From Carpediemonas membranifera BICM (Eukaryota; Protista; Fornicata): a stretch of DNA of 50,407 bases. The translations under genes were made by a program, and so were the position numbers. A model generated the notes under the pieces. It worked only from the letters and a program-made list of their open reading frames with translations. It did no database searches and had not been told where the DNA came from. Location: assembly GCA_019828565.1 (NCBI GenBank), contig JAHDYR010000060.1, positions 1-50,407 of the forward strand, in the 5' to 3' direction. Positions 1 to 10,744 of this stretch are shown here, piece by piece; position 1 is the first letter of the stretch; each line of letters begins with the position of its first letter.

Positions 1-262
1 CTGGACAACCTTCGGCGGGTGAGCAGATTCACTGCTGCTGTCTTGAGTCAGAGCAGTGGATGAGCATACGGGAGGACACGCAGCAGGAGTACACGCCCAG
101 CAGATCTCATCTTGACCAGTTTTTCTCCGGCTTATTCAGGACATTTTTCGGGTTCATCACAACTCACACGTCGCTTGAGCGGGAAGAAGACTATATGGAG
201 TGCGTGCTGTCTGAAGATGATGACGGGGTTTGAGCTTAGCTTTGCTGCCCTATGCCGTGAGT
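1..262 (+). CDS. C-terminal fragment of the family A putative transposase (frameshifted)
   Basis: Translation LDNLRRV/IHCCCLESEQWMSIRED...THTSLEREEDYMECVL aligns by eye with the element B ORF C-terminus LNRLRRVRVHQCCRQARSWFAIRSH...DYTALAWDEESGVMVCEL. Same position, just upstream of the GNAT gene. Confidence 0.65.
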
Positions 263-468
263 AGAGATAGAAAAAGGCTGAGATTGTAAAAAGCATGATT
301 GATGAGAATACATTTCAGCTTGCCGGGAAAGATAATGCGCCCATAATACTTTTGCCTGACCTACTCGTCGAATGTCGTGAATTGACTTCAAATTCGTTTT
401 GTGCTCACTCATGGTGGCACAAATGCAGTTTGCGAAATCAGTGAAAAATTTCAGCAGAAGCGTGAAAC

Positions 469-1461
469 ATGCCTAACGACGAGACTGGAAGAACACGATA
501 TTGGCCGCGATGGCTGTCACCCTAGTATATGTACTACTGGACGACAACAGCCAGTATGTGCACAGCGTACTGTCCTTCCTGTCGTCATTTCATCGTTACG
601 GAAATGCTCGGTGCCATTGAGACTGAACAACACCCTGTATGACCCACCCCAAGCTCTTGCACTAGCATGATCGCTATTGTCAGCACCACCACCAACGACA
701 TCGTCTCTATGCTGCTCATGGTACACAGGAGGGCATTTCGGGTGTGCCGAACTTCAGAGTAAGTACGTCGTTACTCTTGGCACGTGAAGGTGGCCCACCG
801 AGGCAAGGGATATGCGTCAATCCTGCTCGCTGTTGCGTCTGCCGGCGCCAAGCTCAGGCTCCAGTGTGATGAGACTGTCCGGAGTTCTACAAGGGCTTGG
901 ATTCGTGACATCGCTACCTGCAGCGGAATTGGAGTCTATCGAGGATACCTCCAGCCCGAGCTACACGTTGGAGGCAGCGCTCTCTGGCACCAAGTGGGAG
1001 GCTTTGGGTCAGTCTCTTGCCGACTGTGTTGGGTGTGTGAGGGAGATCACCACATTTCTCCACAGCGCGGGTAGACGCTTATCAGCGTCGTCAGGGCTTG
1101 CGGCACCTCATTTCCCCACCCCCAGCCTTCCAATGATCCTGCCTCATCTCGCCGACAACCCGCCCCCAACCCACCCCATGCCCGAAAGCCCGAACGAGTA
1201 AGTACATCACACTGGACTCAGACGGAGGATGACTTGACGATGGCAATGAAGAAGAAGCTCAAGTCGATCAAGGAGGCGAGCAAGCAAAAGTCCACAAACA
1301 CCACGAGAAGCACCCAGCGGAAGATGATCCTCAAGCATATCGAGGAGGGTCACCTCGTCTTCGTTATCAAGATGGCTGCTCTCCGGTCTTACTACAGATC
1401 GCACGCAGATCGCAAGAAAGATAACTACTGGGAAGCCGCGTGGAATATTGAGTATGAGTAA
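469..1461 (+). CDS. GNAT-family acetyltransferase (intron 637-665; frameshifts/stop)
   Basis: Acetyl-CoA motif A-like VAHRGKGYASILL. Blocks RLQCD, KWEALGQSLADCVG and KKDNYWEAAWNI match the element B paralog (RLQCD, KWTNLGKSLTECCG, KKANFWDSEWNI). Confidence 0.7.
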
Positions 1462-1475
1462 AGTCACATGATGAT

Positions 1476-2233
1476 TTAATCAGTCTCTGGGGTCTGCTTA
1501 GTAGACTGGATCATGTAGAACATCATGATCGTCTCGTAGATCTTGCGACGTATGGCATCGCGCTGCTCCGCCTCCACACGCTTCCCGGTTCTGCGCGACA
1601 ATGATATCACCGAGCTCCTCCACGGAAGAATAGGACCTCTTCGGGACCAGTGTGGGTCGCTTGAAGATCTCAGTGGCGTCGGAGGACTGGGTGTTGGCAT
1701 GGAGGATGTGCCGGATCGTCTCCGTGGGGATGTCGAGCCGAGAAGACACGAACTGGTGCACCTCCTCCCTCAGGCCAGCGGGAATCTTGAGGAAAAAGAT
1801 CCCTGTGCGACTTAACGCAGGCCATGAGGGGTCATCAGGGCGAAGCTCGTCTTCGTCGTCGCCGTCGAGGCTGACCAGAGCCGCAAAACGCTTCAGGGCG
1901 CCATTATCGCCATCTCCGGTGTAGGCCGCCTCAATATCCCTCACGGTGGCGTGCCTGTAATCGTTGTTGTCGCGGGCTGACGTGGGATTCAGGTCACGGA
2001 CGTCCTGGTCGCGCCCCAGGTTGTTTTGCCTCCGTCACGATCTTGTTTGCCCTCTCAATCTCGCCCGGATCCTCGAGAGAGTTGATGAAGGATTGGACAA
2101 GGTCCAATGCAGCCATAGTGATCTTGCGCTGCTTCTTCGACAAGTTCAACTGCTTCTGGTTGCGAGCACCAAGCTTCCTTCTCTGCGCGTTAGGCCTTTT
2201 CGGCACTCTTGCCTTCGGATTACTCCTTGCCAT
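1476..2233 (-). CDS. Basic-N-terminus hypothetical protein, homolog of 38097-38858 (split over three ORFs)
   Basis: VQSFI..IERAN, RFAALVSLD, IFKRPT and RDAIRRKIYETIM match VQTFI..ITRAN, RFKALLSLD, IFARPT and RDALRRKVYQAIM in 38097-38858. Confidence 0.75.
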
Positions 2234-2354
2234 GATTGTTTCCTTTAAAATGCGCGTGAAATCTCAGTGAAATTTTTGCACTTTAGGGAAACAACTGCGA
2301 AACATCAGGGCAAAGTGATGATGAAGAACAAGTAGCGCCATTACAACAGCATGT

Positions 2355-8667: not shown

Positions 8668-8967
8668 TCATCTGATCCATGGTAGTGGAGACTCTTGACT
8701 CAGTGGAGAATGGTGGCCAGGAGAAGAAGGCGGACTGCCAACGGGCGTGGCAGAGGCTGAAGACGACGGCTGAGTGGGAGCAGGTTGGGTGGGGGGTGGC
8801 GTTGACGACGAAGAGGTGGATGGAGACGGGCACGGAGATGGATACGGCGAGCTGTACGGCATACGCCTTACTGGAAGCGGCATCTCCGGCCACTTGACGA
8901 ACCTGCACCGCCGGGCAGTTAAATCTTGAGGCCTCTTCTTGATCTGCCTTGGTTTCGTCCTTGGCAT
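8668..8967 (-). CDS. Small Ser/Pro-rich protein with basic N-terminus (MPRTKPRQIKK)
   Basis: GC-rich ORF between AT-rich spacers, with TGTGAAAA motifs just upstream on its strand. Confidence 0.5.
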   Translation of the reverse strand: MPRTKPRQIKKRPQDLTARRCRFVKWPEMPLPVRRMPYSSPYPSPCPSPSTSSSSTPPPTQPAPTQPSSSASATPVGSPPSSPGHHSPLSQESPLPWIR

Positions 8968-9038
8968 CGCTCTGTGCAGAATTAGCCACAGTTTTTCACA
9001 CAATTTTCACACAAAATTTACACGTTTTCAAATAATCT

Positions 9039-10346
9039 TTACTTCCGATCAATCATCGCAATAAACTGCCTGTGGAGTCTTCCGCTTACACCTTTTGCGC
9101 ACTTATTGGTGCTCACCTGCCTGTATCCCTTGTGGCATGTGTCACAGCTGACGTTCTCGCGTCCATGAAGGTCTCTACCACACACTATGCAGCGCCGATA
9201 GAAGACTTGACCCTCAAACCCCCGTTGGCAGCAGTCGACCATTCTCTTTCGCTGATCTACAGAGAGTAAGACCTGTTCAGTATCATCCAAGAGGAGCGGA
9301 CTGGTCTTGGCGACGCATTCATGCACGCGCATGATGACCTTGAGCTTGTCAAGACATTCGGCAGCAGTGGGACGCTTTGTTGGGTCGAAGTGGAGCATCT
9401 GCATTGCCAGGTCGTACAGGCTGAGACAAGTAGGTGGCGTGGTGCCGCGAATCGGGAGCTCAGAGTTCACGTTGACACACTCGAGGCAATCTTTGAAATG
9501 TGTCTGTGCCTGAGGTGACAACTGCAACTGCCCACCATAGAATTGGCACCAGTTCAGCAAGCTACCAAGCTTCAGCATCTTCTTCTTCTTCTTGTTGTCG
9601 ATCTGCGCCATGTTTGCACCCATGTCAGTCACCTTCGCGGCAAAGGGGGACTTGGGGAGACCGTAAAAGAGCATCATAATGACTACACCGCACGAGTAAA
9701 TGTCGGAGGCAGGTGTGACGACATAAGAACAGGCGGGAAGAGCCGATGCAGTCATTCGCGTGAGCTTGGAGGTCTCGTATGGCGCTCTTTGAACTTCCGG
9801 AATGACCGAACGCGCAGCGAGACACTCTTTGAACATCTCTGGGGGTAAATACCCATGCGTGCCGCGATATTCGGATGCTGATTTCAGTTGTATGACCCAG
9901 TTCTCGTCGCTACAAGCCGGCTTCGTCATAGCAGAACCAAAGTCAATGAGGTATCCCTTCTGGTCTGTGCTAAAAAGAAAGTTGTCGGGCTTAATATCGC
10001 AATGAGCAACTCCGTGGTCATGCATGAAGCATACAGACTGCAGTAGATGCGAAACGTAGCGGAACTGAAGGCTGGGCTCAGCCTTACAGAGGTCGACGAA
10101 GAAGATTTGGTCGACATGAGGAGTCATGAAGGCTGGGACATGGTCTACAAAGCCTGTATCGACGACAGGGAGGACATGCGGACTGTCCTTGAGCGCTAGC
10201 AGGGTGGGAACCTCCATATCGTAGTGCTCATCAATCTTGATCACGACCTTCAGCTTGTCAGCTCCAAACTCGTGCAGATACCGTCTACTATTACCACGTG
10301 AGGAAGTCTGTTGCTCCAGCTTCTCACTATCGAGCTCGAACACCAT
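9039..10346 (-). CDS. Ser/Thr protein kinase with C-terminal CxxC..CxxC
   Basis: VVIK, HCDIKPDN, DFG, GTHGYLPPE, SDIYSCG, RPTAAECL. Confidence 0.92.
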   Translation of the reverse strand: MVFELDSEKLEQQTSSRGNSRRYLHEFGADKLKVVIKIDEHYDMEVPTLLALKDSPHVLPVVDTGFVDHVPAFMTPHVDQIFFVDLCKAEPSLQFRYVSHLLQSVCFMHDHGVAHCDIKPDNFLFSTDQKGYLIDFGSAMTKPACSDENWVIQLKSASEYRGTHGYLPPEMFKECLAARSVIPEVQRAPYETSKLTRMTASALPACSYVVTPASDIYSCGVVIMMLFYGLPKSPFAAKVTDMGANMAQIDNKKKKKMLKLGSLLNWCQFYGGQLQLSPQAQTHFKDCLECVNVNSELPIRGTTPPTCLSLYDLAMQMLHFDPTKRPTAAECLDKLKVIMRVHECVAKTSPLLLDDTEQVLLSVDQRKRMVDCCQRGFEGQVFYRRCIVCGRDLHGRENVSCDTCHKGYRQVSTNKCAKGVSGRLHRQFIAMIDRK

Positions 10347-10404
10347 GCACAGGTAGCTGTGCGAAATACGGTCTTAAAGTGCATTTTGCGACAGCTACCT
10401 GTGC
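10347..10404. repeat. Inverted repeat abutting the kinase start codon (second copy 37132-37189)
   Basis: GCACAGGTAGCTGT / ACAGCTACCTGTGC perfect 14-bp arms with a further imperfect stem. Confidence 0.85.
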
Positions 10405-10695
10405 GTCGCTACGAGGGAAGCAGCAGCGGAAATAAAGACAGGAGTAGCTTATGGATAGCATTTATCGACAACCTCAGTGATTCTCTTGGCGAACAGTAGT
10501 CTCAGTGCAGAGAAGCATTTCGTGAAAATGTGTGAAAAATGCAGAAGCTCACAGATGCATGGAAAGCATGTATAGTGATGTCCTGTACATCCAGGGGTGT
10601 TCAGTGCCATCTCTTTCGTTTTCTTGCGCCTTGTGAAAATGGTGAAAAGATTTCACTGAATCTAATGTTTTCACCATTTTTTTTCGTGAAAACGG

Positions 10696-10744
10696 ACTTC
10701 CTCATGATTTCCTCAGGCATCGAAACCCCGTTTTTAACAGTATG
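10696..10744 (-). repeat. Right TIR of family A (49 bp)
   Basis: Identical to 37481-37529 and the reverse complement of 33763-33811. Confidence 0.95.

Follow-up and report, generated by a model that had tools for sequence, protein, structure and literature searches.

The window examined here comprises bases 1-50407 of contig C61 (50,407 nucleotides) in the 24.2-Mb, 69-contig assembly of Carpediemonas membranifera, which is also the genome that was searched for relatives. Its first 10,744 bases hold part of a large DNA transposon, referred to as family A, in which a transposase gene is followed by a set of genes whose products are mostly histone writer-, reader- or protease-like; a second element, of family B, occupies 29631-49963. 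A preliminary description of the window had held that A keeps the cargo of B in the same order and orientation, and that this cargo is a core module under long-term selection and not the product of Pack-type gene capture. The observation is confirmed in part and the inference of a core module is supported, with the qualification that the gene order is a trait of a clade formed by A, B and a third family, E, and that the core carries exchangeable modules.

The family A element and its genes

The segment 1-10744 is the right 77% of a family A copy, truncated by the start of the contig (C61 base 1), which corresponds to element base 3246 in the alignment to full A copies. The ~3.2 kb lacking at the left encode the transposase, which is intact (846 aa) in a copy on contig C19. 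Six further copies, 97-99% identical, are found on C26, C19 (two), C6, C18 and C1, bringing the known total to seven. The C26 copy is complete, with a length of 13,941 bp, both terminal inverted repeats (TIRs) and a GG/GG target duplication of 2 bp. The preliminary description had predicted that a left TIR preceded by GT, and the rest of the transposase, would lie beyond the contig start; the sister copies on C6, C19 and C26 do bear a left TIR, GT precedes it in the C6 and C19 copies, and GT follows the right TIR in the C18 and window copies. Duplications of 2 bp were found in all four complete elements, namely A (GG/GG), B (CA/CA), a 3.8-kb mini-A nested inside B (AT/AT) and a relative from outside this genome (GC/GC). 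The right TIR of A and the left TIR of the nested mini-A (33763-33811) form a perfect inverted match over 49 of 49 bases. The TIRs of A and B have only their first 10 bases in common, CATACTGTTA, and share as little as had been described; with one mismatch allowed, this 10-mer occurs 10 times in the window against 1.6 occurrences expected. The features of the window copy are as follows, with the protein identity between A and B where an orthologue exists.

1-255, plus strand: C-terminal end of the transposase (residues 770-842 of the intact 846-aa protein match window 24-248 by tblastn); A-B identity 40-54%
632-1441, plus strand: GNAT-type acetyltransferase, broken here (stops inside C61:728-1303), 269-270 aa and intact in four sister copies; A-B identity 25%, E 6e-19
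1479-2233, minus strand: basic protein, broken here, 251 aa and intact in C19, C1 and C6; A-B identity 35%, E 3e-36
2333-3042, no strand: intergenic region, rich in hairpins, that separates the divergent basic and 'coiled-coil' genes
3211-4814, plus strand: 'coiled-coil' gene, 534 aa when intact, two frameshifts here; A-B identity 57%
4849-5763, minus strand: SET-domain methyltransferase, intact, 305 aa; A-B identity 33%
5831-6907, plus strand: caspase/CHAT-like protease, 359 aa when intact, two frameshifts here; A-B identity 49%
6932-8135, minus strand: PHD-finger protein, 401 aa when intact, frameshifted here; A-B identity 27%
7856-8384, plus strand: 'small ORF' (open reading frame), antisense over the 5' end of the PHD gene
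8643-8967, minus strand: Ser/Pro-rich ORF, accessory, 109 aa, 41% Ser+Pro
9042-10346, minus strand: protein kinase, accessory, intact, 435 aa
10696-10744, minus strand: right TIR of family A, followed by GT at 10745-10746, half of the presumed 2-bp duplication

In the window copy only the SET and kinase genes are intact, the remaining genes being frameshifted, with intact versions in sister copies; each A gene is intact in at least two copies, except that of the transposase, for which C19 has the sole intact version. With no more than 30 private substitutions, the window copy is young. Repeat-induced point mutation (RIP)-like hypermutation was considered for the many TGA stops in some copies and was rejected, as the private substitutions display no excess of C>T or G>A. 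Dense substitution patches sit in the kinase region, for which a different allele is a likelier explanation than RIP-like hypermutation.

Two of the domain assignments exceed the Pfam gathering score: that of the SET protein (SET, 3e-12, 47.3 bits against a cut-off of 22.4), whose nearest solved structures are SETD2, ASH1L and EZH2, and that of the kinase (Pkinase, 5e-21, 75.6 bits against 31.7), which matches TTK, CDK2 and Cdc7 in the PDB with E values of 7e-9 and weaker. The GNAT protein of A falls below its cut-off (Acetyltransf_7, E 3.6e-4, 21.3 bits against 27) and that of B has no Pfam match; the name is kept because the genes at the corresponding positions in outside elements pass the cut-off (36.5 and 31.4 bits), and the outside GNAT at locus L049 also matches that of A directly. 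Similarly, the PHD protein reaches only 14.7 bits in Pfam, below the cut-off, and its name is retained because a C4HC3 signature (C284-x2-C ... C304-x2-C-x4-H312-x2-C315 ... C327-x2-C330), together with a second Cys cluster, is invariant in four lineages (A, B, E and one outside relative).

The CHAT-like protein has no Pfam or PDB sequence match. It is likely a caspase-fold protease, as suggested by conserved SGH and FATC motifs, each after predicted strands, and by an ESM Atlas model that matches the DUF6642, C11 (clostripain), C14 (caspase) and CHAT families with row-normalised template-modelling (TM) scores of 0.6-0.79; an AlphaFold model from a 4-sequence alignment was poor, with a predicted local distance difference test (pLDDT) value of 38. 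Pfam likewise returned no family for the transposase, basic and 'coiled-coil' proteins or for a 222-residue stretch of B described below, and the 'coiled-coil' protein has no PDB match either.

The first 50 residues of the basic protein have a pI of 12.0 and its N-terminus (MARSNPKAR...) resembles the tail of histone H3, which reads MARTKQTARK. Further H3-tail-like starts were noticed at an internal Met of the SET gene (5619), at the Ser/Pro ORF (8967) and in B at 38858 and 42552, beside that of the basic protein (2233); the sequences are MARSKAP for the SET internal Met and, elsewhere among these starts, MARRKALPPKP and MPRTKPRQ.

Gene order and selection across families A, B and E

A tblastx comparison of A (1-10744) with B (29631-49963) yields a collinear chain of protein-level matches. 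Seven pairs of orthologues stand in identical order and orientation, with 25-57% identity and blastp E values from 1e-13 to 1e-140: transposase> GNAT> <basic, 'coiled-coil'> <SET, CHAT-like> <PHD (arrowheads give the direction of each gene). The claim of a common cargo therefore stands for these seven genes but not for the 'small ORF', whose A and B versions have no similarity to each other, both lying antisense over the PHD 5' end; the 'small ORF' is probably not a gene. At the DNA level only three blocks of the A segment align with B's own sequence, and three more with the nested mini-A. In intact B copies the 222-residue stretch (41047-41715) is fused to the 'coiled-coil' ORF, giving open frames of 712 aa, and A is without this stretch, which may be an OTU protease. 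The CHAT-like gene of the window's B copy is interrupted by a 4.4-kb insertion (43540-47975) that is bordered by a perfect direct repeat of 84 bp and contains a minus-strand ORF of 704 aa.

The layout extends beyond this pair. Thirty loci fetched around CHAT homologues correspond to families A, B and E, and the arrangement <SET CHAT> <PHD is kept in all of them bar one without a SET match; 23 of the 30 are non-A loci (B and E). Family E, with at least 18 copies that are more than 97% alike, displays transposase, GNAT, SET, CHAT and PHD genes in the A/B layout, and GNAT directly follows the transposase in both B and E. The spacing from transposase to CHAT, taken from match coordinates, is ~8.26 kb in at least nine B loci, ~7.65 kb in at least ten E loci and 8.08 kb in A. 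About 110 CHAT-like loci were detected in the genome, with a fixed context wherever this was checked.

The A-B comparison proposed in the preliminary description gave no ratio near 1: over the seven pairs, Nei-Gojobori estimates range from 0.25 to 0.52 for the nonsynonymous proportion pN, from 0.40 to 0.83 for the synonymous proportion pS and from 0.50 to 0.72 for pN/pS, all bootstrap intervals being below 1. Synonymous sites are saturated in six of the pairs (pS 0.65-0.83); the low value of the 'coiled-coil' gene (0.40) is due to an exchanged block, which is treated in the next section. The CHAT gene compared among A, B and E gives pN 0.30-0.36 and pS 0.70-0.74. For SET and PHD, with pS >0.75, the Nei-Gojobori method gives an A-B dN/dS that either has no defined value or is not reliable, and maximum-likelihood codon models were used instead. 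Under GY94+F3X4, omega is 0.04 for the transposase (374 codons, 6 taxa), 0.10 for CHAT, 0.08 for PHD and 0.19 for SET, and omega = 1 is rejected in each case, with twice the log-likelihood difference at 604, 261, 123 and 49, respectively; these values are rough because of saturation (tree lengths of 6-45 substitutions per codon) and because the protein-guided alignment biases them downward. The GNAT codon model has only 25 shared codons and is to be disregarded. Despite the rough magnitudes, the purifying direction of selection is clear. The sole unsaturated comparison, that of the A kinase with the kinase of a further family, K, gives dN/dS of 0.33-0.39 at a dS of 0.24.

We consider it highly probable that A, B and E descend from one element that already carried a multi-gene core, kept since by selection, together with swappable parts. 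The cargo has diverged about as far as the transposase and is under purifying selection, and its members are therefore core genes and not captured cargo, as the preliminary description had proposed. In A and B the core reads transposase>, GNAT>, an H3-tail-like <basic gene, 'coiled-coil'>, <SET, CHAT-like> and <PHD, in this order. The transposase would cut at the CATACTG ends, while the accompanying kit may write, read or erase marks, either on the tails of histones or on the H3-like proteins that the element itself encodes; such handling of marks could keep the element expressed and mobile. One or two genes are the usual content of a TIR DNA transposon. The presence of at least six extra genes, mostly histone writer-, reader- or protease-like, in a fixed order across three families, together with the purifying selection on them and the recurrence of the set in another organism with identical end sequence and a 2-bp duplication, marks them as genes of the element and not as passengers, and how a transposon handles its own chromatin becomes a testable question with defined proteins.

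Beside the roughness of the omega values, several points weigh against this proposition. No single one of the seven A copies has all genes intact. The layouts of E and of another family, D, are derived from match coordinates alone, and the basic and 'coiled-coil' genes of E were not seen. The roles of the genes are suggested by domain types only, and the CHAT, basic and 'coiled-coil' proteins are without a family match by sequence. Two E copies compared with each other give a dN/dS of 1.08, which looks neutral and is as expected for neutral decay after insertion. Gene order is conserved neither in family D nor in the outside relatives, strict collinearity being confined to the A/B/E clade. Finally, part of the resemblance between A and B, in the 'coiled-coil' gene and the region upstream of it, is the result of recent exchange and not of long descent.

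Exchanged modules and alternative explanations

This exchange limits the claim that the A and B proteins are clearly diverged, which holds for most of them (25-54% identical). The stretch 4032-4691 (660 bp, in the 'coiled-coil' gene) is 97.7% identical to B, and 2344-4435 (~2.1 kb, covering intergenic region and the first ~408 'coiled-coil' codons) is 97% identical to family D (C67, C24), whose transposase is only ~32% identical to that of A. The order in D, by coordinates, is <CHAT-like, kinase fragment>, Ser/Pro ORF>, intergenic block, coiled-coil>, PHD>, transposase>; of these, the kinase fragment and the Ser/Pro ORF lie directly upstream of the shared intergenic block and are 87-89% identical to their A counterparts (87.5% at the DNA level for the Ser/Pro ORF). 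This block (2333-3042) keeps 93-97% identity over at least 40 loci in A, in D and, for its first half, in B, even between families with a protein identity of 30%. Possible explanations are a promoter that has been homogenised, a site acting in cis or a mobile insert of small size.

The genome contains at least 200 candidate copies of the kinase. Many intact ones are 83-86% identical to that of A, as is the high-copy kinase of other elements, family K. The kinase and the Ser/Pro ORF had been presented as additions of A; both are in the window, but the kinase is common to other families at 83-89% identity. The near-identical blocks between families imply that the kinase, the Ser/Pro ORF, the intergenic region and much of the 'coiled-coil' gene were recently exchanged. 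Judged by these identities, the kinase and the Ser/Pro ORF are accessory genes, swapped between co-resident families by recombination. Block exchange between families with 32%-identical transposases means that these elements evolve as a stable core with swappable modules.

These same blocks, the 97% match to D despite the distant transposases, the 97.7% match to B, the intergenic region in at least 40 loci and the kinase and Ser/Pro ORF common to D and K at 83-89%, are what favours the alternative that the layout as a whole has been kept alike by ongoing recombination or gene conversion among co-resident families, with selection on a vertically inherited module overstated. We regard this as unlikely, for synonymous sites are saturated in the six remaining core genes, which have therefore not been exchanged recently, their protein identity (25-50%) is comparable with that of the transposase, and the kit is present in the assembly of another organism.

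NCBI assembly GCA_002919055.1 and ENA metagenome ERZ23495434 contain homologues of the transposase with 26-30% identity. A complete outside element of 11,629 bp (L056:2171-13799), on a 16.3-kb contig, has the GC/GC duplication mentioned above, a TIR whose first 36 bases are perfect and begin with CATACTG, and the order transposase> <610-aa protein <CHAT <274-aa protein SET> <PHD. The insertion site of this element is a chromodomain-bearing Ty3/gypsy pol gene (L056:677-2206, 13748-15128); GCA_002919055.1 is therefore eukaryotic, at least partly. A second outside contig reads <SET-like <GNAT CHAT> <302-aa <SET-like transposase>, and two further ones GNAT> <PHD transposase> and transposase> GNAT>. 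As the kit is found in these relatives but rearranged, the gene set is old and its order clade-specific. A quick, unfinished transposase tree, to which little weight is given, intermixes C. membranifera and outside lineages. Word-index protein searches returned matches in C. membranifera proteins only, and no description of these elements or of their chromatin kit was found in the searchable literature.

It has also to be considered whether the cargo consists of neutral hitch-hikers that persist only because the A/B/E split is recent. Copies of any one family are indeed young and undergo neutral decay, but in comparisons across families synonymous sites are at saturation and non-coding DNA is unalignable, and yet the proteins align at E values of 1e-13 to 1e-140; since the likelihood-ratio tests also reject omega = 1, this explanation is very improbable. 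Pack-type capture, by which random host gene fragments would have been taken up by a non-autonomous element and the likeness of A and B would result from chance or a common hotspot, can be dismissed almost entirely: although some capture does happen (the CHAT fragment described below) and the kinase module is mobile among families, the chance that seven full-length orthologues would agree in both order and orientation is about 1 in 7! x 2^7, ORFs are intact across copies with omega well below 1 in an autonomous element with an intact transposase, and the ~110 CHAT-like loci keep their context where checked.

Several side observations were made on these families and their surroundings. A 147-residue CHAT-like piece, 98-99% identical, lies inside larger unrelated ORFs at C42:34722-35162 and C53:5550-5987, where it may be a captured fragment; one ORF holding the piece (protein P0005) is named 'Swt1-like HEPN domain-containing' by a source. 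In family K a PHD-like gene comes after a kinase gene, the distance between the two being ~5.09 kb throughout, and K looks like another toolkit-carrying family. Its kinase and PHD-like loci are the following.

C19:14662-20255
C7:421833-427425
C6:1319371-1324566
C30:5734-11331
C11:428293-433901

Two A copies (C19 and C26) lie in the same type of host element, K, a short way upstream of its kinase gene and with insertion points that differ by ~325 bp (C19, L017:4012-10000; C26, L011:1-2574 and L016:6516-6844), and family A may preferentially insert into this relative. The flank of the C19 copy and the window flank at 15018-15206 have 189 bp in common at 99% identity. At C26:210958-214262 the kinase of A and that of the host element form an inverted pair around the right TIR; the A kinase is unusually diverged there (78% identity, 4 TGA stops), and local gene conversion at this pair is possible. 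Between A and B, window 19585-29630 is a tandem array in which two 3.1-kb units, 99.8% identical, alternate with units 67% similar.

The transposase and comparison with known systems

Pfam contains no family, Transposase_21 and Tnp2 included, that matches any of 15 transposase members, and no sequence-level relationship to known Transib/RAG1 families emerged either from Pfam or from an exhaustive search with HMMER. The latter search, of 1.84 billion representatives, returned only 19 transposase clusters, from C. membranifera and the outside assemblies. An AlphaFold model built from 15 of these clusters has a pLDDT of 80.7. Every one of its 46 Foldseek matches in the PDB with E <= 1e-3 is a RAG1, amphioxus RAG-like or Transib structure (target-normalised TM 0.34-0.52), and the next matches after this set drop to a TM of 0.08. 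The transposases conserve the motifs WxDGW, GDH and LLEExxERDF, with a ~280-residue insert between the second Asp and the Glu motif, a spacing that would correspond to a D, D, E triad interrupted by such an insert. On the model, the family A transposase is predicted to be a DDE enzyme with a RAG1/Transib-like fold.

This fold prediction allows a bolder but rather unlikely hypothesis, namely that these elements are an undescribed RAG1/Transib-fold lineage dependent on a self-encoded chromatin kit, in which the PHD protein would act as a RAG2-like chromatin reader and direct or license the transposase. Histone marks would be set or mimicked by the SET, GNAT and kinase proteins and the H3-tail-like proteins. 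If the PHD protein were such a RAG2-like partner, a RAG1-type cutter would have been joined to a PHD reader much earlier than animal RAG suggests, or such pairs would re-evolve more readily. The combination of a RAG1-like fold and a PHD-finger gene offers a point of comparison for the origin of the RAG1-RAG2 recombinase.

The A-type elements, taken as a selected core with swappable modules, can be set beside four known systems. Pack-MULEs (MULE, Mutator-like element) and Pack-CACTA elements also have host-like genes between TIRs, and here too some fragments and modules move; the A-type genes differ in that they are not fragments but of full length, keep their order from family to family, are under purifying selection and have autonomous carriers. 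Transposons with conserved accessory genes are known, such as MULEs with a ULP1-type protease and Harbinger with a Myb-like protein. As in these, accessory genes have long been retained beside the transposase, but here they number six or more and are chromatin writer-, reader- or protease-like (SET, GNAT, PHD, caspase-like, kinase).

The CMC group (CACTA/Mirage/Chapaev) is similar in its short duplications of 2-4 bp and in large elements that encode more than one protein, the target duplication of Mirage being 2 bp. It differs in that the TIR tip of A is CATACTG and not CACTA, that Transposase_21 and Tnp2 give no Pfam match, and that the fold search with the A transposase returns RAG1/Transib and no other DDE family. 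The closest likeness in fold is to Transib/RAG1 (ProtoRAG), since only RAG1, amphioxus RAG-like and Helicoverpa Transib structures are matched, and both are of the cut-and-paste TIR type with ends that begin with CA. In the A lineage, however, the duplication is 2 bp and not 5 bp; the tip CATACTG(TTA) has only the leading CA in common with the CACAGTG/CACAATG heptamer of the recombination signal sequence (RSS). A kelch-type RAG2-like gene was not seen in A-type elements, which at 12-14 kb, with six or more conserved extra genes, also stand apart from Transib and RAG1 in their composition.

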